Of a stretch of 64,000 nt of DNA, positions 463-49,730 are shown one piece after another. Below the pieces are notes generated by a model. That model saw nothing but the letters and a program-made list of their open reading frames with translations. It made no database searches and was not told the origin of the DNA. The position numbers and the translations under genes are program-made. How positions within the stretch are numbered: position 1 is the first letter of the stretch; each line of letters starts with the position of its first letter. The DNA is taken from the IMG/VR virus record IMGVR_UViG_3300026097_000876, positions 1-64,000 of that record; one strand, given 5' to 3'.

Positions 463-466
463 ATAT

Positions 467-542: not shown

Positions 543-549
543 GTAAATT

Positions 550-634
550 TGGCGACAGCGTGTAGACGGTGCCTCGCTCCACCGTTTCGTGTCGACCGGG
601 TTACCCCACAGTCCAGATCACTACACTTAACCCA
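550..634 (-). ncRNA. CCA-terminated structured non-tRNA RNA between tRNA-Asn and tRNA-Cys
   Basis: Stems GTGTAG/CTACAC, ACGGTG/CACCGT, GGG-GTAA-CCC; ends GTCGCCA; no T-loop or anticodon arm. Confidence 0.55.
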
Positions 635-640
635 CGAAAG

Positions 641-716
641 TGGCTGCCCGAGCAGGACTCGAACCTGCGACCAAGAGATTAACAGTCTCCTGCTCTACCA
701 ACTGAGCTATCAGGCA
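641..716 (-). tRNA. tRNA-Asn(GUU)
   Basis: GGAGA-CTGTTAA-TCTCT; CCA end. Confidence 0.95.
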
Positions 717-725
717 ATAAACTAA

Positions 726-758
726 TGAGCAGTTTCATCCACACTTGCTCAGGTGTGG
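726..758 (-). ncRNA. Small H-type pseudoknot motif, copy A
   Basis: S1 CCACAC/GTGTGG, S2 TGAGCA/TGCTCA, loop ending AAAC. Confidence 0.6.
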
Positions 759-827
759 CCGGCCGGCATTTGTTAATCGTTAAAAGCCATTAGGTCTTAC
801 AAGCCTGATGCCTAAACAGAGCAGGAA

Positions 828-855
828 CAAGCAGTTTAAAATCATACTCAGGATC
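828..855 (-). ncRNA. Small H-type pseudoknot motif, copy B
   Basis: S1 GATC/GATT, S2 TGAGTA/TGCTTG, loop ending AAAC. Confidence 0.55.
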
Positions 856-901
856 ATCACAATAGGGGAACTCTAAGAGCGCAAACCCTAATGCCTATAC
901 T

Positions 902-1074
902 AAAACACATTAGAAAGTGTGCTTATTTTTATTGCCCGATAGCCTAGGATTTGGCAGGGTCTGTCTAATGCGTCTACAAGGTAGCTAATCCTCTACGACG
1001 AGCTAGGACACTTACAGTTCACGCTGGGGTTACCACACTGAACTCAACCCTAAGCACACTTTCTAATGTATTTT
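902..1074 (-). ncRNA. ~170-nt structured element closed by a 24-bp stem
   Basis: Inverted repeat AAAATACATTAGAAAGTGTGCTTA / TAAGCACACTTTCTAATGTGTTTT (one G.U); internal AGTTCA/TGAACT stem; no ORF; promoter directly upstream. Confidence 0.55.
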
Positions 1075-1075
1075 C

Positions 1076-1120
1076 TCTAACTGTTATACACAGTATAAAG
1101 TCGTGTTATTGTTTTGTCAA
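1076..1120 (-). promoter_or_regulatory. Sigma70-type early promoter
   Basis: TTGACA-17 nt-TATACT followed by GTGTATAACAGTTAG. Confidence 0.8.
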
Positions 1121-1121
1121 C

Positions 1122-1221
1122 CTTATTATAAAGCACACTACGGAATCGAACCGTTTTTTGTGTTGTAACACCTATCGCCACGACCTAGTAGCTACTATAG
1201 GCTAGTGTGCTTTATAATAAG
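1122..1221 (-). ncRNA. tRNA-like element lacking a canonical anticodon arm and CCA
   Basis: 19-bp closing stem, TA-GCCT...AGGT D-like arm, ACGG-TTCGATT-CCGT T-arm. Confidence 0.55.
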
Positions 1222-1321
1222 TGCTGGGCTATCCCCAGCTTGACCTATCTTGTAACATCCAGGCCGCCGCCCATTTATTTTTTATAGTGCTTGTAGGTTC
1301 GCGTTACCATTTGCACTTGCA

Positions 1322-1355
1322 TTAAAAAACCCCGGAGTATTTCTACTTCGGGGTT
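1322..1355 (-). terminator. Intrinsic terminator (part of putative attenuator)
   Basis: AACCCCGAAGTA-GAAA-TACTCCGGGGTT followed by U run. Confidence 0.8.
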
Positions 1356-1381
1356 CCGTATAATCTGTTAACTTAACTAAA

Positions 1382-1480
1382 CTATACGGAACTCCCACGA
1401 TCATAAATCCAACCACAGAACATCCCCGCCGGATTCGACTGGACCTCTGTTGTGTTCTTATGCATCGTTTTGTTCATCAT
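1382..1480 (-). CDS. Putative 32-aa leaderless leader peptide MMNKTMHKNTTEVQSNPAGMFCGWIYDRGSSV
   Basis: ATG 6 nt after the -10 hexamer; stop codon lies in the 5' arm of an antiterminator hairpin. Confidence 0.55.
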   Translation of the reverse strand: MMNKTMHKNTTEVQSNPAGMFCGWIYDRGSSV

Positions 1481-1486
1481 AGTGTT

Positions 1487-1516
1487 ATATTAACCTCGTT
1501 GACTCTGTTTGTCAAC
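1487..1516 (-). promoter_or_regulatory. Sigma70-type promoter with overlapping GTTGAC-N7-GTCAAC palindrome
   Basis: TTGACA-17 nt-TAATAT; dyad at 1498-1516. Confidence 0.65.
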
Positions 1517-1546
1517 CTCTTTTTACCTTTTTATTTATCTTTTTTC

Positions 1547-1621
1547 TGGAGCGGGTAGCGAGAATCGAACTCGCATCTAAGCGTTGGCAACGCTTTGTAA
1601 TAACCATTATACGATACCCGC
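1547..1621 (-). tRNA. tRNA-Gly(GCC)
   Basis: AAGCG-TTGCCAA-CGCTT; U73; CCA. Confidence 0.95.
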
Positions 1622-1628
1622 AATATTT

Positions 1629-1937
1629 TTAAATACGCTGTCCTGGTTCATAAAACTGAAATGTCTTGCCAGCGGCAAACACACAGGCTATGTCATTATC
1701 TTTATTCACAACTATAAAGCTCCAAGACTGTGTTTCTGTGTTTATCCACAGTGACGAATACAGTAAGCTGTCATTTCCCTCAGCAATGCCTTCACTTAGA
1801 AATATTAGTTCTTCGTTGTACTCTTGTTTTATAAAGTCAAGTACTATCTCTGTTTTAGCGCAATCAACTGGAACGTCATATACTTCTGCTTTTGCTGGTG
1901 AGGCGATGAGCAAAAACATCGCCAATAGGTATTTCAT
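1629..1937 (-). CDS. Small secreted hypothetical protein inside the tRNA cluster
   Basis: GGAGAG RBS before ATG 1937; signal peptide MKYLLAMFLLIASPAKA. Confidence 0.7.
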   Translation of the reverse strand: MKYLLAMFLLIASPAKAEVYDVPVDCAKTEIVLDFIKQEYNEELIFLSEGIAEGNDSLLYSSLWINTETQSWSFIVVNKDNDIACVFAAGKTFQFYEPGQRI

Positions 1938-1950
1938 TTTTCTCTCCAAA

Positions 1951-1978
1951 TGAGTAGTTTTAAAACTTACTCAGGTTT
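1951..1978 (-). ncRNA. Small H-type pseudoknot motif, copy C
   Basis: S1 AAAC/GTTT, S2 TGAGTA/TACTCA; ends 3 nt before the RBS of the next gene. Confidence 0.55.
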
Positions 1979-2200
1979 ACCTTTCCTGGGCACCATTTGC
2001 TCAATTGTTTTACAAGGGGAACAAAACCCTTAAAAATTTTTACACAATGCAAAGAGTGAGTGGTTAACCAATGCATCGACCTAGCTACTTGATAAACTAT
2101 GTCTATCTTTCACTACTTTCAGGCGGTTCAGGCCTTTATCGCCGTCTCCCTAAGGAGCTTGTGTCTAGGTCTTTTTATAGTAGTACCGAATCTACATATT

Positions 2201-2277
2201 TGGTGCCGCTGGAGGGAGTCGAACCCCCAACCTTCTGGACCTAAACCAGACGCCTCTGCCAATTGGGCTACAGCGGC
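2201..2277 (-). tRNA. tRNA-Leu(UAG) with short variable loop
   Basis: TCTGG-TTTAGGT-CCAGA; A73; 77 nt; 5-nt variable region. Confidence 0.85.
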
Positions 2278-2291
2278 AAATATCATATTTA

Positions 2292-2382
2292 TGGCGGAGA
2301 TGGAGGGATTCGAACCCTCGATACGCTATTAACGTATACTCCCTTAGCAGGGGAGCGCGATCGACCACTCTGCCACATCTCC
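2292..2382 (-). tRNA. tRNA-Ser(GCU)
   Basis: CTCCC-CTGCTAA-GGGAG; long variable arm; G73; CCA. Confidence 0.95.
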
Positions 2383-4079: not shown

Positions 4080-4312
4080 TAACGTTGTCTCCCTTGTTTT
4101 ACATCATAATATTTTGGGCCATCGGAAACGAATTCCATGCCTAGTGCTTTACCAAAGTATTCACCTGTTTTATTGTTATACTTCAATACAATTTTATTAC
4201 CAGCAACGCTTACTGTCAACCCGTCTTCTACTCTAAAATTCATAACTTCAGCGTCGACTTCTATATTAGTGTCTACGTTTTTTAATTTGCACGTGTCTTC
4301 GTGTTTAATCAT
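4079..4312 (-). CDS. Hypothetical protein
   Basis: Tightly packed ORF in the operon. Confidence 0.6.
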
Positions 4313-4496
4313 TTTCAGATTCGTCCCATTTAAGAATTTTCATATCTTTTCCTTTGCCTTGAGTTTTAAGATACCCTTTTTCAATCAATGCATCAATAAC
4401 AGCTCCAGCATCGTTAGTAGATTTAATGTACCAGCCAAACGCAGTACCAATAATATATGCAATAAAAATCCAAAATTCGTTTACCCACATTTCCAT
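4305..4496 (-). CDS. Small membrane protein
   Basis: One hydrophobic helix FWIFIAYIIGTAFGWYI. Confidence 0.6.
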   Translation of the reverse strand: MEMWVNEFWIFIAYIIGTAFGWYIKSTNDAGAVIDALIEKGYLKTQGKGKDMKILKWDESEND

Positions 4497-4507
4497 TAGT
4501 TGTTTCC

Positions 4508-4783
4508 TTAATTTTCGTATAAGTCAGATCGATCGTCGCCGTTAAGGTTACGCATCAGTTCTTGGTTTTCCCGCTCGACTTTCTGTTTAGCATCACGCCA
4601 CATGTCGCGAATTAGAAAAGCAAAAAAAGGAAGAATCATAAATATCAGTGCTGTAATAATAGCGCCGCCTTCATAAACGTTTTTTTCAATATAAACTGCT
4701 AATGCTATTACACTCCAAACGTATACAGCAACACCTACTGGGACTGCAAGATTTTTAAGAAAGTGTTTCCATACTCTAGGCAT
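4508..4783 (-). CDS. Two-TM membrane protein
   Basis: Two hydrophobic helices; GGAG RBS. Confidence 0.6.
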   Translation of the reverse strand: MPRVWKHFLKNLAVPVGVAVYVWSVIALAVYIEKNVYEGGAIITALIFMILPFFAFLIRDMWRDAKQKVERENQELMRNLNGDDRSDLYEN

Positions 4784-4793
4784 TTTAATCTCC

Positions 4794-5588
4794 TTATACC
4801 TTGTATAGTTTTACATAGTTAAGACGTGTTTCGTCTGCGCTGAACATACGATTCTTTGTATGCGACTTTACTTTAGCTTTAAGACGCTTGCGAGCACCTA
4901 CAGCGTGTTCGTACTTGTTCATGAAGCTAACTAGGTTGCCGTCAACTACACCTACGTAGTTGTAGCTCTCCCACTGACTGCTGTAACGCTTGTCCAGTAT
5001 TTCAATTACACCTTCTACAGTTGCGCCAACAGGCTCAATGTGACGGCTGTCACGGTACTCAATACGGATAGTTTTTGTAAGACTTGCCTCGTGCTGATCA
5101 CGTGCGATAAACTCCGGAGCAAACGCAATACGGCCCATGCTCTTAACCGCTACTTGGTCTTGCGACAGTTCTTTAACCATATCTACCTTGAAGCTGTCCA
5201 GCTCACCCAAGCCCAGCATCACATAACGCTTCATCCACTTGCGAGCCTCTTCTACACTAGCATAGTCTGCTTCAGTAGGTTCAAACATTTCAAAGTCTGT
5301 AGGAAGATACTTTGCGTCAGCAGTGTCCAACTTCTTAGCCCAGTAGAAACGCACAAGACTCTTATTGTCAAACTGTGTCTTGTTGTCTTCTGAGAAGCGA
5401 CGAGTGTCTTTGGTGTAAGTGTTGCCGTTGATGCGATATACTGCATACGCTACAGCAAGTGCGTCTGCTAGACTTACCGTTTTCAAAGGAACAGTTCTGT
5501 AAGATTTGTTGTGACTGTGCTTTAGAGCTTCGTCTTCGTGACGTAGTTCAAATGCAATTTCATCTTTTTTGAATTGTGAAAGTGCCAT
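4794..5588 (-). CDS. Hypothetical early protein
   Basis: Own TTGACA/TATACT promoter at ~5614-5640 and AGAGG RBS. Confidence 0.7.
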   Translation of the reverse strand: MALSQFKKDEIAFELRHEDEALKHSHNKSYRTVPLKTVSLADALAVAYAVYRINGNTYTKDTRRFSEDNKTQFDNKSLVRFYWAKKLDTADAKYLPTDFEMFEPTEADYASVEEARKWMKRYVMLGLGELDSFKVDMVKELSQDQVAVKSMGRIAFAPEFIARDQHEASLTKTIRIEYRDSRHIEPVGATVEGVIEILDKRYSSQWESYNYVGVVDGNLVSFMNKYEHAVGARKRLKAKVKSHTKNRMFSADETRLNYVKLYKV

Positions 5589-35406: not shown

Positions 35407-35832
35407 TTAGTGAAGCGGCGGCATGTGATATATCTTTTGTGATATTACACTTTGTGGAAGTTCGTCGATGGAAACTGCTTCTGTATCGTATCCCAAGACC
35501 ATACTCCTGTCCAAATATACTAGGTACATTACTTGTTCTTTTTCAATGTCCTTACTGATATGTATCTCTACCTGTGACTCACTAAACCTATCGGTTAATT
35601 GTAACGTATACGCACAAAGTTGTGCGATTTCATACTCAGTAAATGAACTGTTTTCAATTAGATTCCAAGGTCCTAATTGTGTATTTGGATCAAACGGATT
35701 GCATTTGCGACTACTAATCGGCAAGTCGTTTAAAAATTTTTGTAACAAAGAAAATGGCCGCGGATGTGTTTCTAATGTGTTCCGAAGATCTCTCCATACT
35801 TTGACTTTATCTTCAAATTTTAATTTGTACAT
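35407..35832 (-). CDS. Hypothetical protein
   Basis: 141-aa ORF abutting its neighbours. Confidence 0.6.
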   Translation of the reverse strand: MYKLKFEDKVKVWRDLRNTLETHPRPFSLLQKFLNDLPISSRKCNPFDPNTQLGPWNLIENSSFTEYEIAQLCAYTLQLTDRFSESQVEIHISKDIEKEQVMYLVYLDRSMVLGYDTEAVSIDELPQSVISQKIYHMPPLH

Positions 35833-37454
35833 TAACTTATGACTTTGATTTTAAAATTAAATTCGCCCTGATCATTTGTTGTAGAGTTTAACATGCTGAT
35901 AATAAGTGTGTCAACCCCTGATGCACCATCGGTGTCTACCATAGCAGCTTGGAACTGTAGATTGCTTTCGTATGCAACATCACCTTGGTAACTATGATCG
36001 TCTATAAAATTAATTGCATTACTGTTAGACTTGTCTAACTGAAATGTCATTACACCTGTTCTTTGTGCATTTACAATAGCACTATAATAAGAATATTCAA
36101 CTTCATAGGTTCTATTATAATCGCCTGGCAATCTAAACAAATAGGTATAAGAACTTGCTTCGGACATTTCTAGACTATGCCAGCCTCCGATAGTCGAAAT
36201 TACTTTACCTTTGATTTCTGAAACATATTTGCTGTTTGTAATGTATGTTTGGTTGTAGGACAAGTCAGCTGTTCTAGCAAAGTAATCTTCAACACTACTG
36301 TTTCCTGATTGTACAAAGTCAATCACACTGTATTGTGCGTTGCCTTCGTTGCCGCCGACGTTACCGACTCCTTCATAATTGTTGTGAGAACTAATATTAT
36401 TAGTTCCGTTTGTAATTGCAATTGCTTCTCTATCAATGTTTGTAAAGGCAGATTGACTGATCGTGTTCTTGCACGGTCCTGTGCTTTGTCCAGCTGAACC
36501 AATTGCTGTGTTTTCGCCAAACACAACTCCTTGGCCAATATCTTGGAAATAACAACAATGCCAGTGATTATTGTACACATCATCATCACTTGAAATAGCA
36601 ACACTTAATCCGCTAACCATAACATGATCAAACTTGTTTTTTTGAGTGCCTACTAGCGAACTTAGCGAGTTTAATTTAAACCCTGCGTTAGTTGAAGTAA
36701 TAGTATCTCCAGTTGTCCAAGGACCTGTGATTTTAATTTCTTTAAAATGACTATTCTTACAACTATCTAATACAATAGCCGGCTGTGTTGTACTTACGGT
36801 ACTAACAGTTATTCCTTCTATATGAATATTAGTTGGTTGATTATCTGCTGTATTACTACTTCCGTCAGTATATGCTCCCGGAGTACTTGATCCATTTACT
36901 GTTGAAAATGCTAAATTATCCCCAGTCATAGTAAACTTTGTCTTGTCCATTCCTGCTCCGATAATACTAGCGTATGGAGGAATTTTAATAGTGTCACTGA
37001 TTGTATACACACCTGCAGGAAAATAAAGTTTAACTCTGCTTTGTTCTGTGCCTTTGGTTGAGTTATTAATAAACAGTTGGTCAATGGCTCGTTGAATTGC
37101 CACAGTTTGATCTGTTCCGTCGCCGTTACCGCCAAAGGATCTAATGCTTACGATTTCGTCTAGTCTAGATTGTAATGTTCTTTTGATAGGGGATGTTGCA
37201 CTAGCACCTGTCTGTACTGTGACTCCGTTTAGATAGGCATACGTGTTTGCAAGAGTAAAAAGATCGTCGTGCTCAGTAATTACTTTAGTGTTACCAACTG
37301 CCGGAGCACCTTCAGCAACACTACCGTTACCAATGTACAGTTCTCTCGAATCAACAGCCCAACCAAGTTCGCCGCCTGCAAGTTGTGGTATTCCCGAACC
37401 TTGATTTTTTTGTCCTCTACGTACCTGTATCCTGGAGATCTGCACCACGGCCAT
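35832..37454 (-). CDS. Virion tail/baseplate protein with pectate-lyase-3 beta-helix
   Basis: IQVRRG...QLAGGELGW N-terminus; GDGTDQT..AIQRAID..LYFPAGVY. Confidence 0.75.
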   Translation of the reverse strand: MAVVQISRIQVRRGQKNQGSGIPQLAGGELGWAVDSRELYIGNGSVAEGAPAVGNTKVITEHDDLFTLANTYAYLNGVTVQTGASATSPIKRTLQSRLDEIVSIRSFGGNGDGTDQTVAIQRAIDQLFINNSTKGTEQSRVKLYFPAGVYTISDTIKIPPYASIIGAGMDKTKFTMTGDNLAFSTVNGSSTPGAYTDGSSNTADNQPTNIHIEGITVSTVSTTQPAIVLDSCKNSHFKEIKITGPWTTGDTITSTNAGFKLNSLSSLVGTQKNKFDHVMVSGLSVAISSDDDVYNNHWHCCYFQDIGQGVVFGENTAIGSAGQSTGPCKNTISQSAFTNIDREAIAITNGTNNISSHNNYEGVGNVGGNEGNAQYSVIDFVQSGNSSVEDYFARTADLSYNQTYITNSKYVSEIKGKVISTIGGWHSLEMSEASSYTYLFRLPGDYNRTYEVEYSYYSAIVNAQRTGVMTFQLDKSNSNAINFIDDHSYQGDVAYESNLQFQAAMVDTDGASGVDTLIISMLNSTTNDQGEFNFKIKVIS

Positions 37455-39141: not shown

Positions 39142-40062
39142 TTACTTTTTTTTTGAATCTGATAGCATCTTGCCTAGACGTCTACTTAGATCGATACTTT
39201 CTCTTTTCTCTCTATCTGCTGGCTCGTCTCCTCCAGCGGATGCATCTGCTGTTGCAAATTCATCTTCGTCGTCTTCAGGGGCGTCATCTTCTGCATCGAC
39301 TGGCTCCATTTCTAGATCCATTTCGTCGTCTACTTCATCGCCCATTGTTTGAGGTGCACCTTCGCCTGTTAAAGTAGCTACGCCACCTGTCAAAGCATCT
39401 CTAGTACTTTCCAATGATGTAAACAGTTCTTCTAGCGCAGGTTTAACTGCGGCAATAAACTGTTCAGATTTTTCAATACCTAGTTCGTCTTTAATTTTAT
39501 CGCCTAGTTCTAACATTGATTCGGTTTGCATTTCTGCTGTGTCTTCCATCCAACTAGTAACACGATCAACCATATCTTTAGCTGCCATTACTAGTGTTGC
39601 CTCTTGTTCAGCACCTTCACGTACAACAGATTCTTTCTTGGCTCCTACGTTAGGGTCCTCGTCGTCTTTGTCTGCCCACGGTGGAACTCCGTCGCCATCT
39701 CCGTCTGGCATACTACCTTTGCCTGACTTAGCTTTTTTATCTTCTGGCTTCTTGCTTTTATTCTTTTCTTGATATGCTTTAAGACCTGCTGGAACTTCAC
39801 CTTCTGCCATCTCACGCTCTGCAATCTCTGCATTTACAACATCAAGGAACATTTTACTTTTTTGATACGTATCACTTGTAGAAACGCTGTCAAAACTTTC
39901 ATTAGTTTCAACTTGAAAAAGTTTTGTTCTCAATTTGTTACGAACGTCTTCTAACTGTTCTGTAGTAAATGCATCTACATTAACTGTTTGTCCGAATCTC
40001 TTAGCCAAACTTTCATTTAGTGTCTTGACCGTAATAGGTTTTGAAAATTCTGAAATAAGCAT
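39142..40062 (-). CDS. Acidic head core/scaffold-like protein
   Basis: Very acidic; several L/I-x-E sites; MLISEF N-terminus. Confidence 0.55.
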   Translation of the reverse strand: MLISEFSKPITVKTLNESLAKRFGQTVNVDAFTTEQLEDVRNKLRTKLFQVETNESFDSVSTSDTYQKSKMFLDVVNAEIAEREMAEGEVPAGLKAYQEKNKSKKPEDKKAKSGKGSMPDGDGDGVPPWADKDDEDPNVGAKKESVVREGAEQEATLVMAAKDMVDRVTSWMEDTAEMQTESMLELGDKIKDELGIEKSEQFIAAVKPALEELFTSLESTRDALTGGVATLTGEGAPQTMGDEVDDEMDLEMEPVDAEDDAPEDDEDEFATADASAGGDEPADREKRESIDLSRRLGKMLSDSKKK

Positions 40063-40089
40063 TACTGTATGTTCCTTGTCATTATAGTT

Positions 40090-41094
40090 TTATTTATCAA
40101 ATATAAATGTTTCTATTGCTTCTAAAGCGGTCCAACACTTCTCCATAGCAATATCAAACTGTATTTCTGCGGTGTCTTTTTTAATATTGTTTTTTGAATT
40201 CTCGTATGATCTTTTGGCAAATACAGCATCCATGTAGTATTTACTCGCTCGGTCGTCAAAATTCATTACACTATTAATGTGTTCTTGTTTTTGTTCTATT
40301 GTTAGTTTTGCTATAGCAAGAGCTGCCGCTTTAGTAAATGTTGTAACTATGTGGGAGTTTGTTTTACAATCAAAAAGTTTATAACCTTTTTTGTGTTTTC
40401 GAATTGCAATATGCTTTAGACGAATGCTGTTGCCTTTTTCGTAAGGAATCGCCACTCGATCTAAACCAGTAGTTATTACACGATCTAATTCTTCTGCTAA
40501 TTGTTCATTGAAGATCATTTGCTACAACCAATACAGTCCCGTTATTCACTATTTTACTTAATAAACATTTACGAATCAAAGATTCAATTATGAATCTGTC
40601 TCGTTCTGAAAAACTATGTATTGGTCGTACCGAACTACATTTTTTCAACACTTGTTTCTCCTCATTGGAAGTTTGAATGTCGAAACTTGATAGTAGTTCG
40701 TTTAATTTCATTTTTGGATTAGCTGTTGCACAGCGCCTTTAATTTGGTCTGAGTCCTTTTGATAAACTATCTTTGGTCCTTTTTTGTTTTTAGGATCAGC
40801 TATTGTGATTTCGTTTCCTGCTACTTTATCAACTACAGTTTCTTGATCACCTATGTTGAGTTTTGCACCTGGCTTTAACAATTTATTAGCTGCCATAGTG
40901 TTTGTTTTTTGTGCTACTTTTTGTGCGGCTTTCTCCTGTGCTGTTTTAGGAGGATTAGCTGCGTTAGTTGCTGATTTTACGGCATTTCCCATTGCCTTTC
41001 CAACTCTGCCAACAGCCGAAGAAACTACTTTGCCAACTTGACCCACTGTAGGAATCGCTTCATTAGTATTTTGGCTAAACTCATAAAACCTCAT
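40090..41094 (-). CDS. Three late hypothetical ORFs (40090-40518, 40505-40711, 40708-41094)
   Basis: Overlapping junctions; capsid-targeting-like N-termini. Confidence 0.6.
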
Positions 41095-41683
41095 TTCATT
41101 CTCCTACGTTTTGTACTACGCTTGGTTGGTTTCATTCTAGTTTTATTTAACTTTGAAACTAACTTTGAACTTGGATTGGTCCTTTTAGTAAATCTCGACT
41201 TGATCTTAATTAAAGGTGACTTCTTTGCCTTTGTTTTTTTAAGAGCTTGTTTACTAGCAACGTTAACCGGAGTCGAGCACGTTTGTGCTTTGGCAACAAT
41301 ACGACCTTTCTTTTGTCCTGAGTTACAGCGATACTTGCGAACAAGTTTACCACCTTGGCGACTAAAGATTTGCGTTGCGCCTTCTGTGATGTCGGTAATA
41401 TTCATCTAGCACTCTTGTTTAATCTTGCAAGTGCAACTGATGCTGGATTAGTTCTTTTGGTTTTGCGAGCTTTCCTAGCAATTCTCGGCCCTAGTCTTGC
41501 ACGAGTTTTCTTGAGGGTCATGCGGGCTTTTAAATTAGGCGATGCAAAACACTGTGCCATGTTAGACACAATACGGCCTTTTCTCTGACCCATAGAACAT
41601 TTGTATTTGCGGACGAGTTTTTTACCTTTGCGGCCCCAAACTTGTTTTTCTTGTATTTTTGATGTTATTTCTGTGATCTGCAT
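41091..41683 (-). CDS. Tandem paralogous basic proteins (41091-41405 and 41402-41683)
   Basis: Both carry KLVRKY(R/K)C..GQ(K/R)KGRIV...C. Confidence 0.75.
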
Positions 41684-41702
41684 ATGGTATTTATGCAGGA
41701 TG

Positions 41703-41939
41703 TTATTGAAAGGATATTAATAGAACTACGATAGTAGATAATAGGCCTGCAACAATAGTACCGGTTGCACCAATCAAGACTTTCATCATAGACTTGTTGC
41801 CTTCTTGAATATCATTGTGTATATCTTCAACTTTAAGCTCAATCTTGTTAAGACGTGACTCAAGATTTTGATATCTCTGCTCGCACAAATCAACATGTGC
41901 TTCTAAACTTTCTCTTTCTAGTTTGGTGGCTCTTGCCAT
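41703..41939 (-). CDS. Coiled-coil plus C-terminal TM protein (holin/XhlA-like)
   Basis: LEAHVDLCEQRY...; single TM. Confidence 0.55.
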   Translation of the reverse strand: MARATKLERESLEAHVDLCEQRYQNLESRLNKIELKVEDIHNDIQEGNKSMMKVLIGATGTIVAGLLSTIVVLLISFQ

Positions 41940-42010
41940 AACCGAATCTCCGTTCCTATTTTCTCTGGAAGGGGCCTTACTTTGTACCTAAATGATTATG
42001 TGATGTTTGC

Positions 42011-42403
42011 CTATTCTATTACTATGTTTTGTTGTTTGCCTTGTGCTCTAAACACATTATTATTTATCTTAATGGTTTCATTTAGACCCGAAACAACCGG
42101 AACTAGGTCGAAATCTTTTAATAAGTCAATAGGATTAGGAAATTCTTGACCTTCATCTATCTTGCATTCCAGTGTCCAAACATGATGGCTTCCTTTGTAG
42201 TCTTCGCCAAAGCCTAGCTTTTTTAATTTTGCTGTTGATATTTTTTCAACAGTAGGAGACTGATCAAAATAAATGTTAGTCCTTAGAGTTAAGGTTTGTA
42301 CAAAAGTCATAAAGTTTGCTTGTTGATTGATCGCAATATTATCCATGCTATTACTTTTATGTTGTTTAGTTTCTGTGATATCAATCAAGGTATAGACTTT
42401 CAT
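42011..42403 (-). CDS. Hypothetical protein
   Basis: ORF after a terminator. Confidence 0.55.
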   Translation of the reverse strand: MKVYTLIDITETKQHKSNSMDNIAINQQANFMTFVQTLTLRTNIYFDQSPTVEKISTAKLKKLGFGEDYKGSHHVWTLECKIDEGQEFPNPIDLLKDFDLVPVVSGLNETIKINNNVFRAQGKQQNIVIE

Positions 42404-42420
42404 AAACTTACTTATTGCTG

Positions 42421-42452
42421 ATAAAAAAAGAGCCACTTAAAAAGTGGCTCTT
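42421..42452 (-). terminator. Intrinsic terminator
   Basis: AAAGAGCCACT-TTTTA-AGTGGCTCTTT followed by T run. Confidence 0.75.
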
Positions 42453-42498
42453 TAGTGTGACGCCTTCCGTTGTCACGGTTCCTAAGGTAGTAGGAATC

Positions 42499-42894
42499 TT
42501 ATGCTGCGTTAAGACCGATGAATGTGCCTGGCTCAGTTACTGTTACAACTGCGTTTCCGCCTGCTGCATCTTTCCAAATACCTGCACCTTCAATAAGACC
42601 TGTGTCTTCGATGATGTGGCCTAGACGTGCTGCAATTGAAGTAATGTCATTTGCATGACCGTCCATTACAACTACTAGTTCTTCACCGTCTGCTGCAAAC
42701 TCAGCTAATAGTGGGCTTAGTGCTCTTAGCATTCCACGTGCTGTACCTTCGGTGATTGCTGTGCCTGCGCCGCCTGCTTGTGTGTCAGCTGTTGCTGCTG
42801 TTTCTAGTACGATTTTAAAAACTTTTAGTTGAGCTGTGCTTACTAAATCTTCTAGTGCGATTAAATCGCTGTTTACTCTTGTTACTCCTGCCAT
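42499..42894 (-). CDS. Probable abundant late structural protein
   Basis: CTAAATA late promoter, 5' hairpin, AAGGAG RBS, own terminator; Ala/Gly/Thr-rich. Confidence 0.6.
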   Translation of the reverse strand: MAGVTRVNSDLIALEDLVSTAQLKVFKIVLETAATADTQAGGAGTAITEGTARGMLRALSPLLAEFAADGEELVVVMDGHANDITSIAARLGHIIEDTGLIEGAGIWKDAAGGNAVVTVTEPGTFIGLNAA

Positions 42895-42972
42895 TTTCTT
42901 TCTCCTTTTCTTGAAATGACACTTCGTTACTCTACGAAGTTGTTATAAGTATTTAGCTTAGAAGAAAAAAAA

Positions 42973-44236
42973 CTACTTTTTAGGTTCTTTTTTGGCTCGA
43001 TTTTCTAAATTTCTTAACTGTTGGGCAAATCCTGGTCCAGCTTTAACTATGTTGTCTATAACTTGTATTGCAGGCAAGTATCCCTGAACTACACTTGAAG
43101 GGATGCTCTTGCCGTCCTTAGCTAATTCTAAAAACTTTTTAGTCATCATTAAGTTTTTGGTTCCTACAAGATATCTATACGACAACATATCTTGTCCTGT
43201 TACAGCAATGTCCGGAACACTAACTTTTGGTTCTGAATCACTTACTGTGCTAGTTTCTAAATTTTTATCAGCGGCTAACTTTTCTAAGTTGTCAATAATA
43301 TCACTTGAACGTAGTTTTGCTCGTGATGCGAATAATAACCTGGTTACTATTGCTTTACGATTTACTCGGTTTAGACTTGCCCAATTGAATACAGACCTGC
43401 GGATTGCCTTGTAGTCTGAATTAGTAATACTCAGTGCGGCTTCTATTTTAATAAAAGTTTCTGCATCAGATCTATCAACAGCACTTCCGTTTGATAGTTT
43501 AGACATATAACCGTTAAATCGCATTGTAGGAAAGTTTGTGCGTTGTCTTAGAGTCATTGCAGCGCCAGGATCTTTTAGTTTATTTAGAGCAACTTCGTCA
43601 CCATTTACAAAATAAACAAAATTATGCAGGTCAGTCCCGTTCATTTTAAACTGGGAATAATCACTATCTTTAGTTTTCTTTGCATAGTTTACAGCCGAAA
43701 CACTGTGTGTAGGATATTTTCTTAGCAATTCAAGAACCAGCATCGTGAGATACAGACGCTGACCACAATCGGTATAGGTCAGCGATCTTACATTGTTTTG
43801 ATCACGGGTCAATCTCGCTTCGTGTAGTTCCTGTAAAAACTTCATCTTATTTCATATATTTTTGAACAAAGTTTTGTACAATTTGTTTTGGATTGTCTGA
43901 AAGAACATCTTCTAATCCTACTGAACTTTGAATATCTTTTTGGAACTGAGCGCGGATAGTGCTTTTAACATTGTCTGTTCTTGCTAGCATACCTAAAGTT
44001 TTAGCTTGTTCTGGACTTATGTTAAATGTTTTGCCGTCGTCAGTCTTGACCGAACGAACAGGATCTTTAATATCATCTCCCTGACTTTGAACAATTTTTT
44101 CTAACTGGTCTGTCATAGGATCTTCATCGTATCCTTTACCCATAGTTGCATCATCATCTTGATCTAGTTCTGACCCTACTCCGCCTAGTTCTAAATCATC
44201 AAATTCACTTTCATTAAGCAAATCAATTAATTTCAT
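42973..44236 (-). CDS. Two late hypothetical proteins (42973-43845, 43847-44236)
   Basis: N-termini MKFLQELHEA and MKLIDLLNES. Confidence 0.65.
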
Positions 44237-44245
44237 TTGTTTCTC

Positions 44246-46627
44246 CTATCGTTCTATAGCTCTGTTCGCAGCACTAAATCCTGCTCTGTTAACTAATTTA
44301 ATATCGCCTTCGGGATGTGCTAGTACATAGCCTTCGCCGCCTGACTTTCCAGCTGTTTTTGCTTTAACGGTTCCTGGTCTGCTGTCTAAATCAGAAATAA
44401 TACTATCTTTAACTTTCATTATTCCTGATATAACTTCAAACAACGATGTCCATGCACTCATGTTCTGTTTAATATATTCGATAATCTTTTGTTTCTTACC
44501 TTGGCTGATGTCTTTTTTAGTATCTAACCATTTAATAAAGTCGCGCCCAAGATTATCAAGACCTGTGTCTACTTTGCTGTTCATATACTTATAAATGATT
44601 TTAGGAAAGTCTTTCATTTTCATTTGTGTAAGTTTGTTTACATCTAATAAACTATCAATATCAGCAGAGTCTTTTTTAATAATTTGTGCAAGTCTATTAA
44701 TTTCTGAATTATCAACTTGTGCAGGCTCTTCAATAGTCACAGGCGGTACCACTAATAAATCATTGCCTTGGAATATGTCTAAGTCTTTTAATGGCTGTTC
44801 ACTGCCGTCTGCATTTACCATTCTGTGTACAACTACACCGGCGGTTGATCTAGCAATCTTTTTACCTAGATCGCTTTCAACATCTATAGCATATTCAACA
44901 ATATTTGGTTTGAACACAAAGTTTTTATCTTGTACTGGCGGAGTATCATAGTATAACAGATCACCTTTGAAGTATCCTCTATACTCTTCAGGAACTGCCT
45001 TTTCAAACACACCGAATGCTTGTGCCATGTTGTTCGCAAATGCAATACGTTTAGGATCGTCTTTGTTTTTACCACCGCTTCGATTGAGAAGTTCTTGTTT
45101 AAGTGCTTCTGGATCAGTTGTTCTGCCAACTCCGCCTGACTTAATAAACCCTCCTTTGTCTGTGAATACAAATTCGCCATTATCATTTCGTCCAAAAACA
45201 ACCGCTGGTGATCCATCCCATTTTAGTGTTACATTGTTTTTGCCTTCTTGTGCCATATTACGTAAACTTTTTAAAGCTCTAAGTGCTCCTTGTGACCCTT
45301 GTAGATACACTAGGTCTTCTGCATGATCAATGCGAGCACCTTCTGTAAGTTGTATGCTTTCTGTAAATTTATTGTAAAATTTTAGACCGCGTTTTTTATC
45401 TATTGTTTTTATCTTGTCATTTTGAACGCTAGTCCAAATTTTTCTTTTGTCGTCATAGGTCCAAATGTTTTTTTGCTTGTCAACAAAAGAACTTCCTGAT
45501 TTAATATCTTTAGTGTCTTTGCTGTCGCTAGCTTTTCCTACTACTGGATCACTGGTAATGCCAGCTGTCTTTTTAACAGCATCAACTCCTTTTGATATTT
45601 TATCGCCAACTTGGCCCGGGATTGTTTTTGCTCCGCCTGCTTTTTTATATTCTCCTGGCATATCTTTTAATTCACCGCCTGGAGAAAATGTTGATCGGCC
45701 TGCTTTGTATCCTGCATATCCCGATTTTGCCGCGTCTCGCCCTATCATGTACGCCTTGCCAGCTGTTTTAGCGGCAAGTTTTCCTGCTCCTTTGATTGCT
45801 TTCCCTACAAACTCGTCTGTGCGTTTTCTCTCAGCTATTCTAATTCCTGCCCTAAGAGCATTAGTATGTTCGGGTACCAATTTACCCTGCTTTTCCATAT
45901 TCTCTTTCCAAGGAGCAATTAGTTCATCGTAGTTAGGATCACCTTTTAACTTTGCCAACATACTTTCAACAGTATGGGTATCTGGTTCTTTAGCACCTTT
46001 GCCCAATAGTATCTCTGCAATCTCATCCCAGTTGTCTGCAACAACAGCATCACCGTTGTTAGGATCAACTATGCCCTTTGTAGGACTAAACTTGTAACCT
46101 CTGCCTCTTGCGAGACTAGACAGTAGTACAGCTCTGTCTGCTCCAGTATAGTTTTCTGTGCCGCCACGCTTTGCACCTTTTTGTAGTGCAGGATTGTCTG
46201 TCAGCATAAAGTCTGTTTGTACAAAACCGTTTTTAGGATTGCCTTTTATAGGTGTGCGGAAGTGTACTTGATTTCCAGCATCTTTGATCCATCCTGCTTC
46301 GAAGGTCCTGCCCTTATTCATAATCTCTAAATCAGGGATGCCTTGCTTTTGACACCACGCACTAAGTTTTGCTATTATTTCTTCTTTAGGCAATTCCCTA
46401 GTATCTGTGTTTAGATCTAAATCACCAGATGAGTTCTTTTTAAATGTTCCATCTGGATCTGTTTTTGTACCTGTAGTTCCTAGAAATTCTTTTTTAGTAA
46501 ACTTAAATCCGAATGTACTATTAAGCCAATCTATTGTTGGTTGTACATCAGCTGTAGCAATTCTTGATGCAATTAATTCCTTTTCAGGTTCTGTCTTAAA
46601 AACATTGCCGCTTTCTTTAAGAATCAT
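44246..46627 (-). CDS. Pol-beta-like nucleotidyltransferase fused to an ATP-dependent ligase-like (KxDG) domain
   Basis: SSGDLD...VQTDF; TLKWDGSP...FKGDLLY...GEGYVL...KLV. Confidence 0.65.
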   Translation of the reverse strand: MILKESGNVFKTEPEKELIASRIATADVQPTIDWLNSTFGFKFTKKEFLGTTGTKTDPDGTFKKNSSGDLDLNTDTRELPKEEIIAKLSAWCQKQGIPDLEIMNKGRTFEAGWIKDAGNQVHFRTPIKGNPKNGFVQTDFMLTDNPALQKGAKRGGTENYTGADRAVLLSSLARGRGYKFSPTKGIVDPNNGDAVVADNWDEIAEILLGKGAKEPDTHTVESMLAKLKGDPNYDELIAPWKENMEKQGKLVPEHTNALRAGIRIAERKRTDEFVGKAIKGAGKLAAKTAGKAYMIGRDAAKSGYAGYKAGRSTFSPGGELKDMPGEYKKAGGAKTIPGQVGDKISKGVDAVKKTAGITSDPVVGKASDSKDTKDIKSGSSFVDKQKNIWTYDDKRKIWTSVQNDKIKTIDKKRGLKFYNKFTESIQLTEGARIDHAEDLVYLQGSQGALRALKSLRNMAQEGKNNVTLKWDGSPAVVFGRNDNGEFVFTDKGGFIKSGGVGRTTDPEALKQELLNRSGGKNKDDPKRIAFANNMAQAFGVFEKAVPEEYRGYFKGDLLYYDTPPVQDKNFVFKPNIVEYAIDVESDLGKKIARSTAGVVVHRMVNADGSEQPLKDLDIFQGNDLLVVPPVTIEEPAQVDNSEINRLAQIIKKDSADIDSLLDVNKLTQMKMKDFPKIIYKYMNSKVDTGLDNLGRDFIKWLDTKKDISQGKKQKIIEYIKQNMSAWTSLFEVISGIMKVKDSIISDLDSRPGTVKAKTAGKSGGEGYVLAHPEGDIKLVNRAGFSAANRAIER

Positions 46628-46877
46628 TTTTCTTTGCCTCGTTTATTTTATTAATGCCACGCTTAAACTTGCGAGGATCGGAACTTTTAACACTATTAAT
46701 AAACCGTCTTTCTAATTCTAGTGCTTCCTCCGGATCATAATGGTCGGAAATCTTTTCAAATAGATTGATAACACTTTCAATTAAATTTTGACCAGTTGTC
46801 TCGATAAGATGTGCATTATCGCGATTCAAATTTAAATTGTTTAGCTCTTCTAATATCGATCGAGTATGTTTTTTCAT
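46617..46877 (-). CDS. Hypothetical protein
   Basis: Downstream of a CTAAATA late promoter. Confidence 0.6.
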   Translation of the reverse strand: MKKHTRSILEELNNLNLNRDNAHLIETTGQNLIESVINLFEKISDHYDPEEALELERRFINSVKSSDPRKFKRGINKINEAKKNDS

Positions 46878-46946
46878 TTATTACGGCTCCGTAATGTATT
46901 TAGCGTAGTGTTACGGTAAATATGCATATAGATGAAGGAGGGCATC

Positions 46947-47708
46947 ATGTCTATTATTAACCTTACTCTCGCTCAGAGAGGACTGTTGTTTGCTAAACTT
47001 GCTAGTATTGCGTATTTTAATGCTAAAGAAGCAAAAAGTCAAGCAAAAAAATTAGGATTTACTACAGTAGAGTTTTATGATAAAGCAGGGGCACAGGCTT
47101 ATCGCTTTATGAACAAAGTCGATCTTGTTATTATTTGTCGCGGTACGGAGCCAACAGAATGGAATGACATCAAAGCAGACCTAGACGCTGTACCTGTAAT
47201 GGCAGAGACTGTTAGTCGTGTACACAGAGGTTTCAAAGCAGAAGTTGACGAGCTATGGCCAATGGTTATGGAAGATGTTCAAAGAGAAGGTGACGAACGA
47301 GATGTTTGGTTCTGTGGGCACAGTCTAGGAGCAGCAATGACTACTATTATGGCAAGTCGTTGTTTCCACGATCCAGACTTACCAAATCCTGTGGAAGTAC
47401 ACACCTATGGTTCGCCTCGTGTAGGATGGCCAGGATATGTTAAGGGGTTAGGCATGACACATCATCGTTGGGTAAACAACAATGATATCGTAACCAAAGT
47501 TCCAATGGCTATCATGGGTTATCGTCATCACGGTATCGAACATTACATTGATTCAGAAGGTGATGTTGATCAAGAAAAGGGCTTTGCTCGCTTCTGGGAT
47601 GGCTTCCAAGGGTTCTGGAGAGGACTTGTTTCAGGTAAGGTTGATCAAATCGACGATCACAATATGAGTAACTATATTGCTCACTTGGAGCGTTTTGCTA
47701 ACAAGTAA
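46947..47708 (+). CDS. Class 3 lipase (alpha/beta hydrolase)
   Basis: CRGTE, VHRGF, GHSLGAA, YGSPRVG, DIVTKVP, DDHNM. Confidence 0.9.
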   Translation: MSIINLTLAQRGLLFAKLASIAYFNAKEAKSQAKKLGFTTVEFYDKAGAQAYRFMNKVDLVIICRGTEPTEWNDIKADLDAVPVMAETVSRVHRGFKAEVDELWPMVMEDVQREGDERDVWFCGHSLGAAMTTIMASRCFHDPDLPNPVEVHTYGSPRVGWPGYVKGLGMTHHRWVNNNDIVTKVPMAIMGYRHHGIEHYIDSEGDVDQEKGFARFWDGFQGFWRGLVSGKVDQIDDHNMSNYIAHLERFANK

Positions 47709-47883
47709 CGAATGACCGTTGCCACTGACAGTATGCCTGCCCAACACAGATATACTGTCAGTCCACTTCCGCCTGTGAGTTCTAAGAGCTCAGTTCTACT
47801 AAAAAACGATCCTGCTACACCTAGGCTTACCAGCATAAAAGCAAATGCCACAGCCCAACAAATTAATAAGTTCAATAACAGTT

Positions 47884-48258
47884 TCAATCCAGTATCCCCT
47901 TAATAACAAAACTCGGACGCTCGTCGTATTCCTCTCTGAAGTATGGAGGTATCTTGATGTCACTGGAGAAATACCAATGACTGCCATTTGCAGGATCTCC
48001 CACACTCTTGTTGCTTATTCTGCACACACAGGGCAAATGAGTCCAACCCATTAGAGGCATCATATACACACGATGATTGCCACTGTCTAATCTTATGGTT
48101 CGTTCAATAATGTTTACCCAGATAATGATAGGATCCTTCACACCATTGCGATCCACGTCTCTACCCAGCTCAACCATGTCCAGTGCATCTACAGGTGTAG
48201 GAGGCATCGCGGCCCATTGTAATAGTTTTTTGATTGATATCTGCTCAATTACATCCAT
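47884..48258 (-). CDS. ParB/Srx N-terminal-like domain protein
   Basis: NGVKDPII...LDSGNHRV. Confidence 0.6.
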   Translation of the reverse strand: MDVIEQISIKKLLQWAAMPPTPVDALDMVELGRDVDRNGVKDPIIIWVNIIERTIRLDSGNHRVYMMPLMGWTHLPCVCRISNKSVGDPANGSHWYFSSDIKIPPYFREEYDERPSFVIKGILD

Positions 48259-48259
48259 G

Positions 48260-48973
48260 TCAGTCCCAGTATTTGTCTCCGTCTATGTTGTCCCAGTATT
48301 CTTCGTTGTTGCGATTCCAAAAGTTCTTTATCAAATACCATGCCATGCCAAAGTATCCCATCTTCTGAAAACGTCTGCTGTCCTGTCCGAAGTGATGATT
48401 AATTAACTTGAACTTTTCTGGCTTGTACTGCTTGCTTAGGAAGAAATCTTCGGAAGTAACATAACGGCAAGGAAAGCCTCCCAGTTCTTCAAAGCGGTCT
48501 CTGCGTGTGAGCATGAACGCACCCACCGCAAACGGCACTGAATACTGCATGAAGCTGTTGACGATGTTGAACAGGGTAAATCCTATTCTTGCTCGAATGT
48601 CTCCGTCATAGCATTTGATATACATGCCCAGCAAATCCAAGTCGTGCGACTCAAAGATGCACACACTGTCTGCTATTTCTGTGTGGGTAAAGAAACGCAC
48701 GTCAGCATCTATGAACAGGATGTATGGTGTTGTCGCATGCTTTGCACCATTGTTCTTGGCTTCTGAAACAGGTCCGCCTTCAACCACTTTGATGTTGAGT
48801 TTGTGCTGTTTCTGTTTGCGTTCGATAACCTTGCGAGTGTCATCGTCACTGGCATCTGCTATAATGATTTGAGTGTCGGCTACCTGCTTTGCTAGATCGT
48901 CAAGTAGATGTCCAATATAGTCCTCCTCGTTCTTAGAGGGTATGACTATGGTTATCTTGTTCTTCAATGTCAT
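48260..48973 (-). CDS. Glycosyltransferase family 2
   Basis: IVIPSKNEE, IIIADASDD, YILFIDAD, SEDF. Confidence 0.9.
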   Translation of the reverse strand: MTLKNKITIVIPSKNEEDYIGHLLDDLAKQVADTQIIIADASDDDTRKVIERKQKQHKLNIKVVEGGPVSEAKNNGAKHATTPYILFIDADVRFFTHTEIADSVCIFESHDLDLLGMYIKCYDGDIRARIGFTLFNIVNSFMQYSVPFAVGAFMLTRRDRFEELGGFPCRYVTSEDFFLSKQYKPEKFKLINHHFGQDSRRFQKMGYFGMAWYLIKNFWNRNNEEYWDNIDGDKYWD

Positions 48974-49730
48974 CCGGTTTTCCATCGTTGTTGTATTCGT
49001 AAAACAGTATTTCCCAGCGTCCGTCGGTGTGTTCTAACAGAGCTGAACAGCTCTCGACCCAGTCGCCATCGTTCATGTATTCTATGCCGTTTATTTCTTT
49101 TATCTCTGCTGTGTGAATATGTCCACAGATAGCACCATCGTAGCCTTTCTTATAACAATAGTCTGCGACGTGCTCTTCGAATGAGTTGATGTAGTTCACA
49201 GCACCCTTAGTTTTTGATTTGAGAAACTTGCTTAGGCTCCAGTAAGGCATGCCAATCCAGCCGCGAACTGTGTTGAAGTGTGTGTTAAACCATATCAGTG
49301 TGTTGTATGCCGCATCGCCCAAATGCATTATCCACTTCTTGTTTGGCATCATCAAGCCATCAAACATGTCGCCATGAACAACCAAATACTTCTTGCCGTT
49401 CACCGCACGATAATCATAACGGTTTAGTATTCGAATGCGTCCTATGTCGATGTCGTATGACAGGAACTTGCGGATAACTTCATCGTGATTGCCCAGTATG
49501 TAATACACTTTGGTATCACGCTTGGCTGCTGTGAATATGCGTCTAATAACATTGGCGTGGCTTTGTGGGAAATACCAGCGTTTCCTCAGTCGCCAGCCGT
49601 CTATGATATCGCCAACTAGGAATAAGTTATCACAGGTGTTTTCTTTTAGAAAGGCACAAAGAGCATCGGCTTGGCAACCACGAGTGCCTAAATGTATGTC
49701 TGAGATGAAGATGCTCTTATAATGAGCCAT
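48933..49730 (-). CDS. PlcP/LpxH2-type metallophosphoesterase (putative phospholipase C)
   Basis: FISDIHLG, LVGDIIDGWRL..RWYFPQSH, GNHDE, HGDMFD, CGHIH, NDGDWVESCSAL. Confidence 0.8.
   Translation of the reverse strand: MAHYKSIFISDIHLGTRGCQADALCAFLKENTCDNLFLVGDIIDGWRLRKRWYFPQSHANVIRRIFTAAKRDTKVYYILGNHDEVIRKFLSYDIDIGRIRILNRYDYRAVNGKKYLVVHGDMFDGLMMPNKKWIMHLGDAAYNTLIWFNTHFNTVRGWIGMPYWSLSKFLKSKTKGAVNYINSFEEHVADYCYKKGYDGAICGHIHTAEIKEINGIEYMNDGDWVESCSALLEHTDGRWEILFYEYNNDGKPDDIEEQDNHSHTL

Follow-up and report, generated by a model that had tools for sequence, protein, structure and literature searches.

In the 64,000-nucleotide stretch of DNA analysed here (positions 1 to 64,000 of the IMG/VR record IMGVR_UViG_3300026097_000876; hereafter the window), which belongs to a 262-kb viral record with an estimated completeness of 73%, the minus strand carries at 44246-46627 a single uninterrupted open reading frame (ORF) of 793 amino acids, with a ribosome-binding site, GAGG, 9 nucleotides 5' of its ATG. 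Its product combines an N-terminal domain resembling family X DNA polymerases (PolX) with a C-terminal ligase-like domain, the two being joined by a long linker. As 284 full-length two-domain homologues were recovered from other samples (marine metagenomes), this fusion is not an artefact of assembly. DUF6267 is the sole Pfam family matching the protein (E 2e-36), its PHROG match carries no function, and NCBIfam returned no match for it or for orf86, the small ORF upstream. Searches of PDB sequences with the whole protein, with profiles of both domains and with a distant member of the N-terminal domain family yielded matches at chance level only. The features of the ORF, in the order of the protein, are the following:

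44246..46627, minus strand: whole ORF (P0001), comprising a PolX-like domain, a K/G/A-rich linker and a ligase-like DUF6267 domain
45842..46627, minus strand: N-terminal domain, residues 1-262, a minimal family-X-polymerase-like module with palm and thumb
46613..46627, minus strand: MILKE, residues 1-5, an (L/I)xE element just before a nearly invariant GGNxF (SGNVF here)
46403..46432, minus strand: SSGDLDLNTD, residues 66-75, with catalytic aspartates 1 and 2 (D69 and D71), both invariant
46208..46219, minus strand: QTDF, residues 137-140, with the third catalytic aspartate, D139, invariant
46070..46150, minus strand: YTGADRAVLLSSLARGRGYKFSPTKGI, residues 160-186, thumb helix and hairpin with invariant G185; structural matches align this region with the PolX thumb
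45353..45841, minus strand: linker, residues 263-425 (163 residues), K/G/A-rich and poorly conserved, starting with IAE
45830..45838, minus strand: IAE, residues 264-266, the (L/I)xE site at the start of the linker
45611..45652, minus strand: EYKKAGGAKTIPGQ, residues 326-339, a short, strongly conserved motif within the otherwise variable linker
45338..45352, minus strand: QLTEG, residues 426-430, an (L/I)xE element immediately preceding the point where the ligase-like domain becomes structured; E429 is at least 90% conserved, yet falls in the unmodelled part
44249..45337, minus strand: C-terminal domain, residues 431-793, Pfam DUF6267, a predicted ligase-like adenylyltransferase fold without OB domain
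45212..45223, minus strand: KWDG, residues 469-472, candidate ligase motif I, with K, D and G invariant
44951..44965, minus strand: GDLLY, residues 555-559, candidate motif III, with D556 at least 90% conserved
44384..44710, minus strand: helical insertion, residues 640-748 (about 110 residues), between the candidate motif IIIa region and motif IV, holding invariant K740
44321..44335, minus strand: EGYVL, residues 765-769, candidate motif IV, with E765, G766 and V768 invariant
44291..44299, minus strand: KLV, residues 777-779, candidate motif V, with K777 invariant

A PolX-like domain fused to a ligase-like domain

An earlier reading of this DNA, made without database searches (the sequence-only reading), had proposed a double nucleotidyltransferase on the strength of a few motifs, all of which are present: SSGDLD (residues 66-71), KWDG (469-472), GDLLY (555-559), EGYVL (765-769), KLV (777-779) and QLTEG (426-430). 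These motifs exceed chance expectation because the residues concerned are invariant columns in alignments of 122 relatives of the N-terminal domain and 97 relatives of the C-terminal domain, and structure searches back both of the proposed folds.

In the N-terminal domain the invariant columns are D69, D71, D139 and G185. The domain displays a Pol-beta-type palm signature, in the form of LGTTGTK...SSGDLD followed by QTDF, with three carboxylates; its G-T-x-G...SSGDxD stretch appears to resemble the segment GSxRRG...SSGDMD of Pol beta. The AlphaFold (AF2) model of the domain is confident (pLDDT 94.4), and all 50 of the 50 PDB matches listed by Foldseek are to Pol beta, Pol lambda or bacterial PolX, with a probability of about 1.0 over about 215 columns. 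In VIA, residues 1-221/230 of the model align with residues 102-335 of Pol beta and with nearly all of the Pol X of African swine fever virus (ASFV), whereas non-PolX nucleotidyltransferases cover only residues 24-153. The Pfam model DNA_pol_B_palm matches 5 of the 122 relatives (best E 2.9e-6) and the corresponding thumb model matches 2, weakly; the ESM Atlas neighbours of the domain are viral clusters carrying the DNA_pol_B palm and thumb families. Neither the 8-kDa dRP-lyase subdomain nor the helix-hairpin-helix subdomain was found in the 262-residue model. Both of these are present in most members of family X and absent from ASFV Pol X. As the invariant aspartates, the confident model and the Foldseek and ESM Atlas matches agree, the N-terminal domain is a minimal PolX-like module, consisting of palm and thumb without the 8-kDa and helix-hairpin-helix parts. 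The Pol-beta-superfamily nucleotidyltransferase of the sequence-only reading can thus be specified as PolX-like, and its suggestion of a CCA-adding or cyclic-nucleotide (CD-NTase) role finds no support, since beyond the common palm we saw no likeness of fold to such enzymes, be it in the neck and body or in a cGAS-like C-lobe. Taken alone, the domain has matches in 250 clusters at 50% identity, which come almost entirely from marine phages that have not been cultured and in which it occurs either as a stand-alone protein (about 240-290 residues) or inside proteins of up to 1300 residues.

The C-terminal domain scores 126.6 bits against DUF6267 (PF19782; E 2e-36), compared with the curated cut-off of 27. 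Its invariant columns are K469, D471, G472, G479, Y579, G588, H601, K740, E765, G766, V768 and K777, and 7 of these 12 lie in the KxDG motif, the EGxV motif and the lysine of motif V. In the AF2 model (pLDDT 92.4) the residues of motifs I, III, IV and V lie on or beside beta strands, and K469 is predicted from its motif to be the AMP-accepting lysine. There is no OB domain, and hence no motif VI, because the protein stops 14 residues past K777. Foldseek matches in the PDB are weak (E 0.08 or worse), with T4 Rnl1, an archaeal RNA ligase, a fungal tRNA ligase and several DNA ligases prominent among the best of them. AlphaFold DB offers an "RNA ligase domain-containing protein" at E 2e-4, BFVD the "RNA ligase" of phage Atu_ph07 (E 7.7e-3) along with several phage RnlA proteins, and the Swiss-Prot structures trypanosome RNA-editing ligase 2, DNA ligases and a tRNA ligase, so that ligases dominate the structure searches in VIA, PDB, AlphaFold DB, BFVD and Swiss-Prot alike. 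The local patterns ILTKEDGS and EGYVAVMKDGSHFKIK of T4 Rnl1 have counterparts in DUF6267, VTLKWDGS and EGYVLAHPEGDIKLV, at similar spacing; hhalign comparisons of the domain profile with T4 Rnl2 (as a single sequence and as a 113-sequence alignment) and with T4 Rnl1 gave nothing. On this evidence the domain very likely belongs to the ligase superfamily, and the ligase-like adenylation domain noticed earlier finds support in the structure searches. For the C-terminal half by itself over 1800 relatives were found, most of them stand-alone proteins of about 380 residues, and our literature search found no paper mentioning DUF6267. Among these relatives are a group of phage proteins of about 561 residues in which DUF6267 is fused to a Cu/Zn superoxide dismutase (P0162, P0166, P0170 and relatives; an ESM Atlas cluster), and in other phages, including cyanophage S-PM2, a cytidylyltransferase domain resembling NMN adenylyltransferase (NMNAT) is fused to DUF6267 or follows it.

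The linker between the domains was described in the sequence-only reading as rich in Lys, Gly and Ala, which the composition confirms (K/G/A at 18/12/10%, against 10/9/7.5% in the remaining protein). A long linker is restricted to this clade, its median length being 164 residues against 26 in distant fusions. Within it several positions of EYKKAGGAKTIPGQ are at least 95% conserved among close homologues, and this segment may be an interaction motif.

Pairing of the two modules and their gene neighbourhood

Of 63 multidomain proteins containing the N-terminal domain, 40 also contain DUF6267. The remaining partners include CTP_transf_like (13 proteins), NT5C (3), DUF5661 (3) and Amidoligase_2 (2), with ART-PolyVal and Tad3, a Thoeris inhibitor, as single cases; the CTP_transf_like partners find their best NCBIfam matches in NMNAT models, far under the curated cut-offs. 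We note that the rare PolX-like fusions with Tad3, Amidoligase_2, ART-PolyVal and DUF5661 (P0320, P0260 and one ART-PolyVal relative) recall phage polyvalent proteins. The order of the domains is mostly polymerase followed by ligase, and is reversed in three representatives.

The two modules also travel together as separate genes. In the related contigs L003-L005 the PolX-like and DUF6267 genes overlap at stop and start, and the split pair is flanked as in the window by a homologue of orf86 upstream (55% identity) and a homologue of orf290 downstream (46%); in contig L006 the pair is located with a HAD_PNKP phosphatase gene and an NMNAT-like gene. A jumbo phage that has been cultured, Atu_ph07, encodes in gp065 an unambiguous relative of the N-terminal domain (hhalign 99.6%, E 1e-24), and the gene overlapping it, gp066, encodes a different ligase-like protein with KLDGS, EGVVF and KTK motifs, a weak Pfam RNA_ligase match spanning the whole model and the UniProt name RNA ligase; hhalign detected no similarity between gp066 and the DUF6267 profile. 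The pairing of the PolX-like module with two different lineages of ligase is strong evidence that polymerase and ligase form a functional unit.

The immediate surroundings of the ORF contain four further features:

46617..46877, minus strand: orf86 (86 residues), sharing 11 nucleotides at its stop with the start of the main ORF; kept upstream of the split genes (L003 6867-7127) at 55% identity
42973..43845, minus strand: orf290, the conserved downstream partner, with 46% identity to the L003 gene (9716-10666) that follows DUF6267
47014..47042, minus strand: sigma-70-like promoter TTGACT-17-TAAAAT upstream of orf86, a consensus match only
42427..42453, minus strand: terminator-like hairpin with a 12-base-pair stem and a T run, a possible operon end

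The orf290 product is also homologous to Atu_ph07 gp064 (4156-4944), the gene after the PolX-like gp065. The orf86 product and the orf290-type protein of about 290-316 residues may belong to the module as additional subunits. The ESM Atlas was uninformative for orf290, no phage match was found for a 306-residue neighbour, and orf129 is not conserved in L003. Sigma-70-like matches as a whole are not above chance.

Genes for ribonucleotide reductase and an exonuclease lie near the cluster in the window. Elsewhere, DUF6267 is found between gp41/MazG and gp61 in cyanophage Syn1 and near DNA polymerase B in L004, and a primase/helicase gene occurs near gp064-066 of Atu_ph07. The gene upstream of the Syn1 DUF6267, Syn1_159, was considered as a relative of the N-terminal domain and ruled out. 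Likewise, the two CTP_transf_like genes of the present genome are not ligase partners, being instead heptose or sugar-nucleotide enzymes (HldE-like). No recognised DNA or RNA ligase family was found in the 262-kb record.

Proposed function and its alternatives

The two folds, their invariant residues of catalytic type and the evolutionary coupling of the modules provide the ground on which an activity, a cofactor, a substrate (DNA or RNA) and a role for the linker may be proposed. We lean, with modest confidence, towards a bifunctional nucleic-acid repair enzyme that fills gaps and seals nicks, probably on DNA. In such an enzyme the 3'-OH in a short gap would be extended with nucleotides by the palm and thumb, by means of D69, D71 and D139 and a pair of metal ions. 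The DUF6267 domain would act as an OB-less polynucleotide ligase of an RNA-ligase-like branch, in which K469 becomes adenylylated and the AMP is moved to the 5'-phosphate, after which the nick would be closed with the assistance of E765 and K777. The 163-residue K/G/A linker may supply the non-specific affinity for nucleic acid that normally comes from helix-hairpin-helix and OB domains. The most likely substrate would be nicked or gapped phage DNA, and the role might be the repair of single-strand breaks or base-excision intermediates or the maturation of lagging-strand fragments, possibly via a ribonucleotide patch. DNA is favoured because the gene contexts comprise ribonucleotide reductase, exonuclease, gp41/MazG, gp61, DNA polymerase B and primase/helicase, and the HAD phosphatase (NT5C, HAD_PNKP) and Cu/Zn superoxide dismutase partners would fit the healing of ends and oxidative strand breaks. 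PgVPolX, a fusion of PolX with an NAD+ ligase, has been shown biochemically to fill and seal base excision repair (BER) gaps (PMC5537341), and is a direct functional precedent. Given the RNA-ligase-like character of the domain and the absence of an OB fold, it is a live possibility that the nicks sealed carry a 3' ribonucleotide, in the manner of LigD or Rnl5-type repair.

Several observations weigh against this proposal. The window protein's own N-terminal domain has no Pfam PolX match and is without the DNA-binding subdomains that most PolX enzymes have. In the ligase-like domain, the assignment of K469 comes from the motif, and candidate motif III has an Asp where ligases usually carry a Glu. 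A Pfam scan of the 97 members of that domain found no ligase family, and a PDB profile search found no sequence-profile link to any ligase family. The choice of DNA comes from gene context, because the nearest ligase relatives are RNA ligases and the OB domain is absent; to our knowledge, an OB fold is present in every characterised DNA ligase. Finally, an Xth-type AP endonuclease was not found in the 73%-complete genome, which has only a short HhH-GPD fragment. That fragment, a 130-residue ORF (genome 255544-255933), passes the Pfam cut-off and may encode a glycosylase in truncated or minimal form, which could supply a BER pathway.

The affinity of DUF6267 with RNA ligases brings up a different possibility, also part of the sequence-only reading, namely that the protein repairs RNA or tRNA: the ligase would rejoin tRNAs or other RNAs broken by ribonucleases of the host, in the manner of T4 Rnl1, while the polymerase-like domain would rebuild or tail RNA 3' ends. 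The nearest fold relatives of the ligase domain are indeed Rnl5, REL1, Rnl2, Trl1 and Rnl1, the domain is OB-less as in all RNA ligases, and the pattern and spacing of motifs IV and V resemble those of T4 Rnl1. Moreover, a gene for a HAD_PNKP-type phosphatase lies near the pair in L006, NT5C/HAD fusions occur, and the phage has at least 10 tRNA genes. However, no polynucleotide 5'-kinase domain is found among the partners in the 63 multidomain relatives, the neighbouring genes, both here and in relatives, serve DNA replication and nucleotide metabolism, a distance of 42 kb separates the ORF from the tRNA cluster, and a PolX fold bearing a thumb further weakens the case. We therefore see no support for the idea that the protein complements the tRNA cluster, and consider RNA repair in general to be distinctly unlikely. 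The cluster itself (window 18-2382, minus strand) comprises 10 genes, for Thr, Ala, Tyr, Trp, Pro, Cys, Asn, Gly, Leu and Ser.

The partner domains admit yet another interpretation, in which the pair does not act on nucleic acid but makes, modifies or destroys a small nucleotide, NAD-related or signalling, for anti-defence. In its favour, the NMNAT-like CTP_transf_like domain is the second commonest partner (13 of 63), and there are single fusions with Tad3 and ART-PolyVal as well as the Amidoligase_2 fusions. Nevertheless, the protein has the thumb typical of templated PolX enzymes, its ligase motifs are those of polynucleotide ligases, and fusions of the anti-defence kind are rare. The signal interference suggested in the sequence-only reading receives no backing, and we regard such a small-nucleotide function as very improbable.

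A separate issue is raised by the boundaries of the modules. The sequence-only reading had suggested a protease-cut polyprotein delivered with the virion, which is a question of deployment and is therefore compatible with either substrate. In this scenario a packaged polyprotein would be cut by a protease of the T4 gp21 type after LKE5, IAE266 and LTE429, and the separate modules injected with the DNA. Such a protease is in fact encoded (Peptidase_S77, genome 172842-173474, 89.8 bits), its nearest relatives being the prohead proteases of the jumbo phages Phosso, Atu_ph07, SCTP-2 and PA5oct. The protein contains eight (L/I)xE sites, three of which (residues 3-5, 264-266 and 427-429) coincide exactly with the N-terminus and the two ends of the linker, thereby bounding both folded modules. 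Among relatives an (L/I)xE precedes GGNxF in about 70% of N-terminal domains, whether the domain is terminal or internal, and ARIxHxED in about 68% of C-terminal domains, and gp065 of Atu_ph07 begins with MGGRAF, the very N-terminus that such a cut would make. Furthermore, 9 of the 12 consecutive ORFs on the minus strand between 39.1 and 46.9 kb (window 39142-46877) have an (L/I)xE within their first 14 residues, as in MLISE, MNITDITE, MQITE, MKFLQELHE, MKLIDLLNE and MILKE, compared with 16.5% genome-wide and about 10% at internal positions. MKFLQELHE, the leader of a neighbouring ORF, is one that we take to resemble the T4 capsid-targeting sequence, and among the neighbours is a gene with a match to a PHROG virion structural protein. 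Given that a gp21-type protease is encoded, this run of leader-bearing ORFs may represent a cluster of head-internal, injected proteins.

Against the polyprotein, gp064-066 of Atu_ph07 are annotated as hypothetical although mass spectrometry of the virions led to gp068, nearby, being annotated as a virion protein, and the DUF6267 protein of Syn1 bears no virion-protein flag in a record that uses such flags. The T4-type late promoter TATAAATA shows no enrichment and is missing upstream of the operon. The leader of five residues is shorter than the T4 targeting sequence, which has 10; the conserved LxE-GGN may be just part of the fold; and relatives have the halves as separate genes, for which no protease is needed. 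On balance we hold the polyprotein to be unlikely. Its combination with the fill-and-seal activity, that is, a repair kit carried in the virion, packaged, cut at the (L/I)xE sites and injected so as to mend breaks made by sunlight or oxidants before phage genes are expressed, appears to us quite improbable; if true, the Cu/Zn superoxide dismutase-ligase fusions of related phages would share this strategy.

Other genes of the window and the wider genome deserve mention in their own right. Two tandem, overlapping and very basic paralogues of 104 and 93 residues (window 41091-41405 and 41402-41683, minus strand) are 47% identical (E 2e-26), have in common the pattern G.KLVRKY.C..GQ.KGRIV and match no family. 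Beside the main ORF lie envelope and sugar genes for a class 3 lipase, a family 2 glycosyltransferase and an LpxH-like metallophosphoesterase (window 46932-49730), while an HldE-like heptose kinase/adenylyltransferase and a cytidylyltransferase-cupin protein are encoded at genome 125284-126534 and 92481-93251. A gene on the minus strand at window 35832-37454, syntenic in related contigs (L003 15708-17158), combines the N-terminus of a tropism determinant (Mtd_N) with a pectate-lyase-like domain and probably encodes a receptor-binding or depolymerase protein.

Relationship to known systems and wider significance

For the favoured fill-and-seal enzyme the closest parallel in architecture is PgVPolX of Phaeocystis globosa virus 16T, likewise a single polypeptide of a large double-stranded DNA virus with an N-terminal family X polymerase and a C-terminal ligase (PMC5537341). 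However, the polymerase of PgVPolX comprises the entire Pol-beta core with its 8-kDa dRP-lyase domain, whereas the phage protein has palm and thumb only, and the ligase of PgVPolX is of the LigA-type, NAD+-dependent kind, to which the OB-less, RNA-ligase-like DUF6267 is unrelated. The phage protein further differs in the 163-residue K/G/A linker that joins its modules and in that its virus is a tailed phage. The likeness thus looks like convergent architecture rather than common descent. ASFV Pol X (PDB 5hr9) resembles the phage domain in comprising palm and thumb only, at about 10% sequence identity, but ASFV encodes its polymerase and ligase on separate genes and its ligase has an OB domain. 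Bacterial LigD, the ligase of non-homologous end joining, follows the same logic by uniting polymerase and ligase (and phosphoesterase) modules in a single protein, although its polymerase belongs with the archaeo-eukaryotic primases and an OB domain is part of its ligase. The domain order of LigD is permuted between lineages, as is that of the phage modules.

Among phages, the array gp066-gp065-gp064 of Atu_ph07 likewise has a member of the N-terminal domain family overlapping a ligase-like gene, followed by the homologue of orf290, and its prohead protease belongs to the same jumbo-phage clade. There, in contrast, the genes are separate with the ligase first, gp065 is without an LxE leader, and gp066 is not detectably DUF6267 by sequence. 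As regards the ligase-like domain itself, the best fold matches are the RNA ligases T4 Rnl1 and Rnl2, Rnl5 of Naegleria and Deinococcus, and trypanosome REL1, which share with DUF6267 the KxDG lysine, an EGYV followed 12-13 residues on by a lysine, and the lack of an OB domain. Likenesses in individual motifs are seen in KEDGS and EGYVA of T4 Rnl1 and in KLDGS of Atu_ph07 gp066. Unlike known RNA ligases, which add N- or C-terminal domains, DUF6267 carries a helical insertion of about 110 residues ahead of motif IV and stops just past motif V, and no profile-level similarity between them was found.

A fusion of PolX with a ligase is known already from PgVPolX; what is new here is the combination of a minimal PolX with an uncharacterised, OB-less family of ligase-like proteins, and its presence in tailed phages. 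In a 2022 review of phage DNA polymerases, family X is represented among viruses by ASFV alone (PMC8775771). The present gene is one of a large family of minimal PolX-like modules, with its 250 clusters at 50% identity. DUF6267 itself occurs in 468 phage records, 453 of which are cyanophages, a number close to that of cyanophage records with a T4-type protease, and the family apparently reaches nearly every ocean cyanophage. In T4-like cyanophages no homologue of the T4 ligase gp30 has been found (PMC2984593, PMC2993671), with a distant homologue being left open (PMC2984593), and DUF6267 is a candidate for the ligase role of gp30 in these phages. If confirmed, it would represent a new ligase architecture in which the OB domain is absent and a helical insert stands ahead of motif IV, and, as ligases and small polymerases serve as laboratory tools, it would be of practical interest as well.

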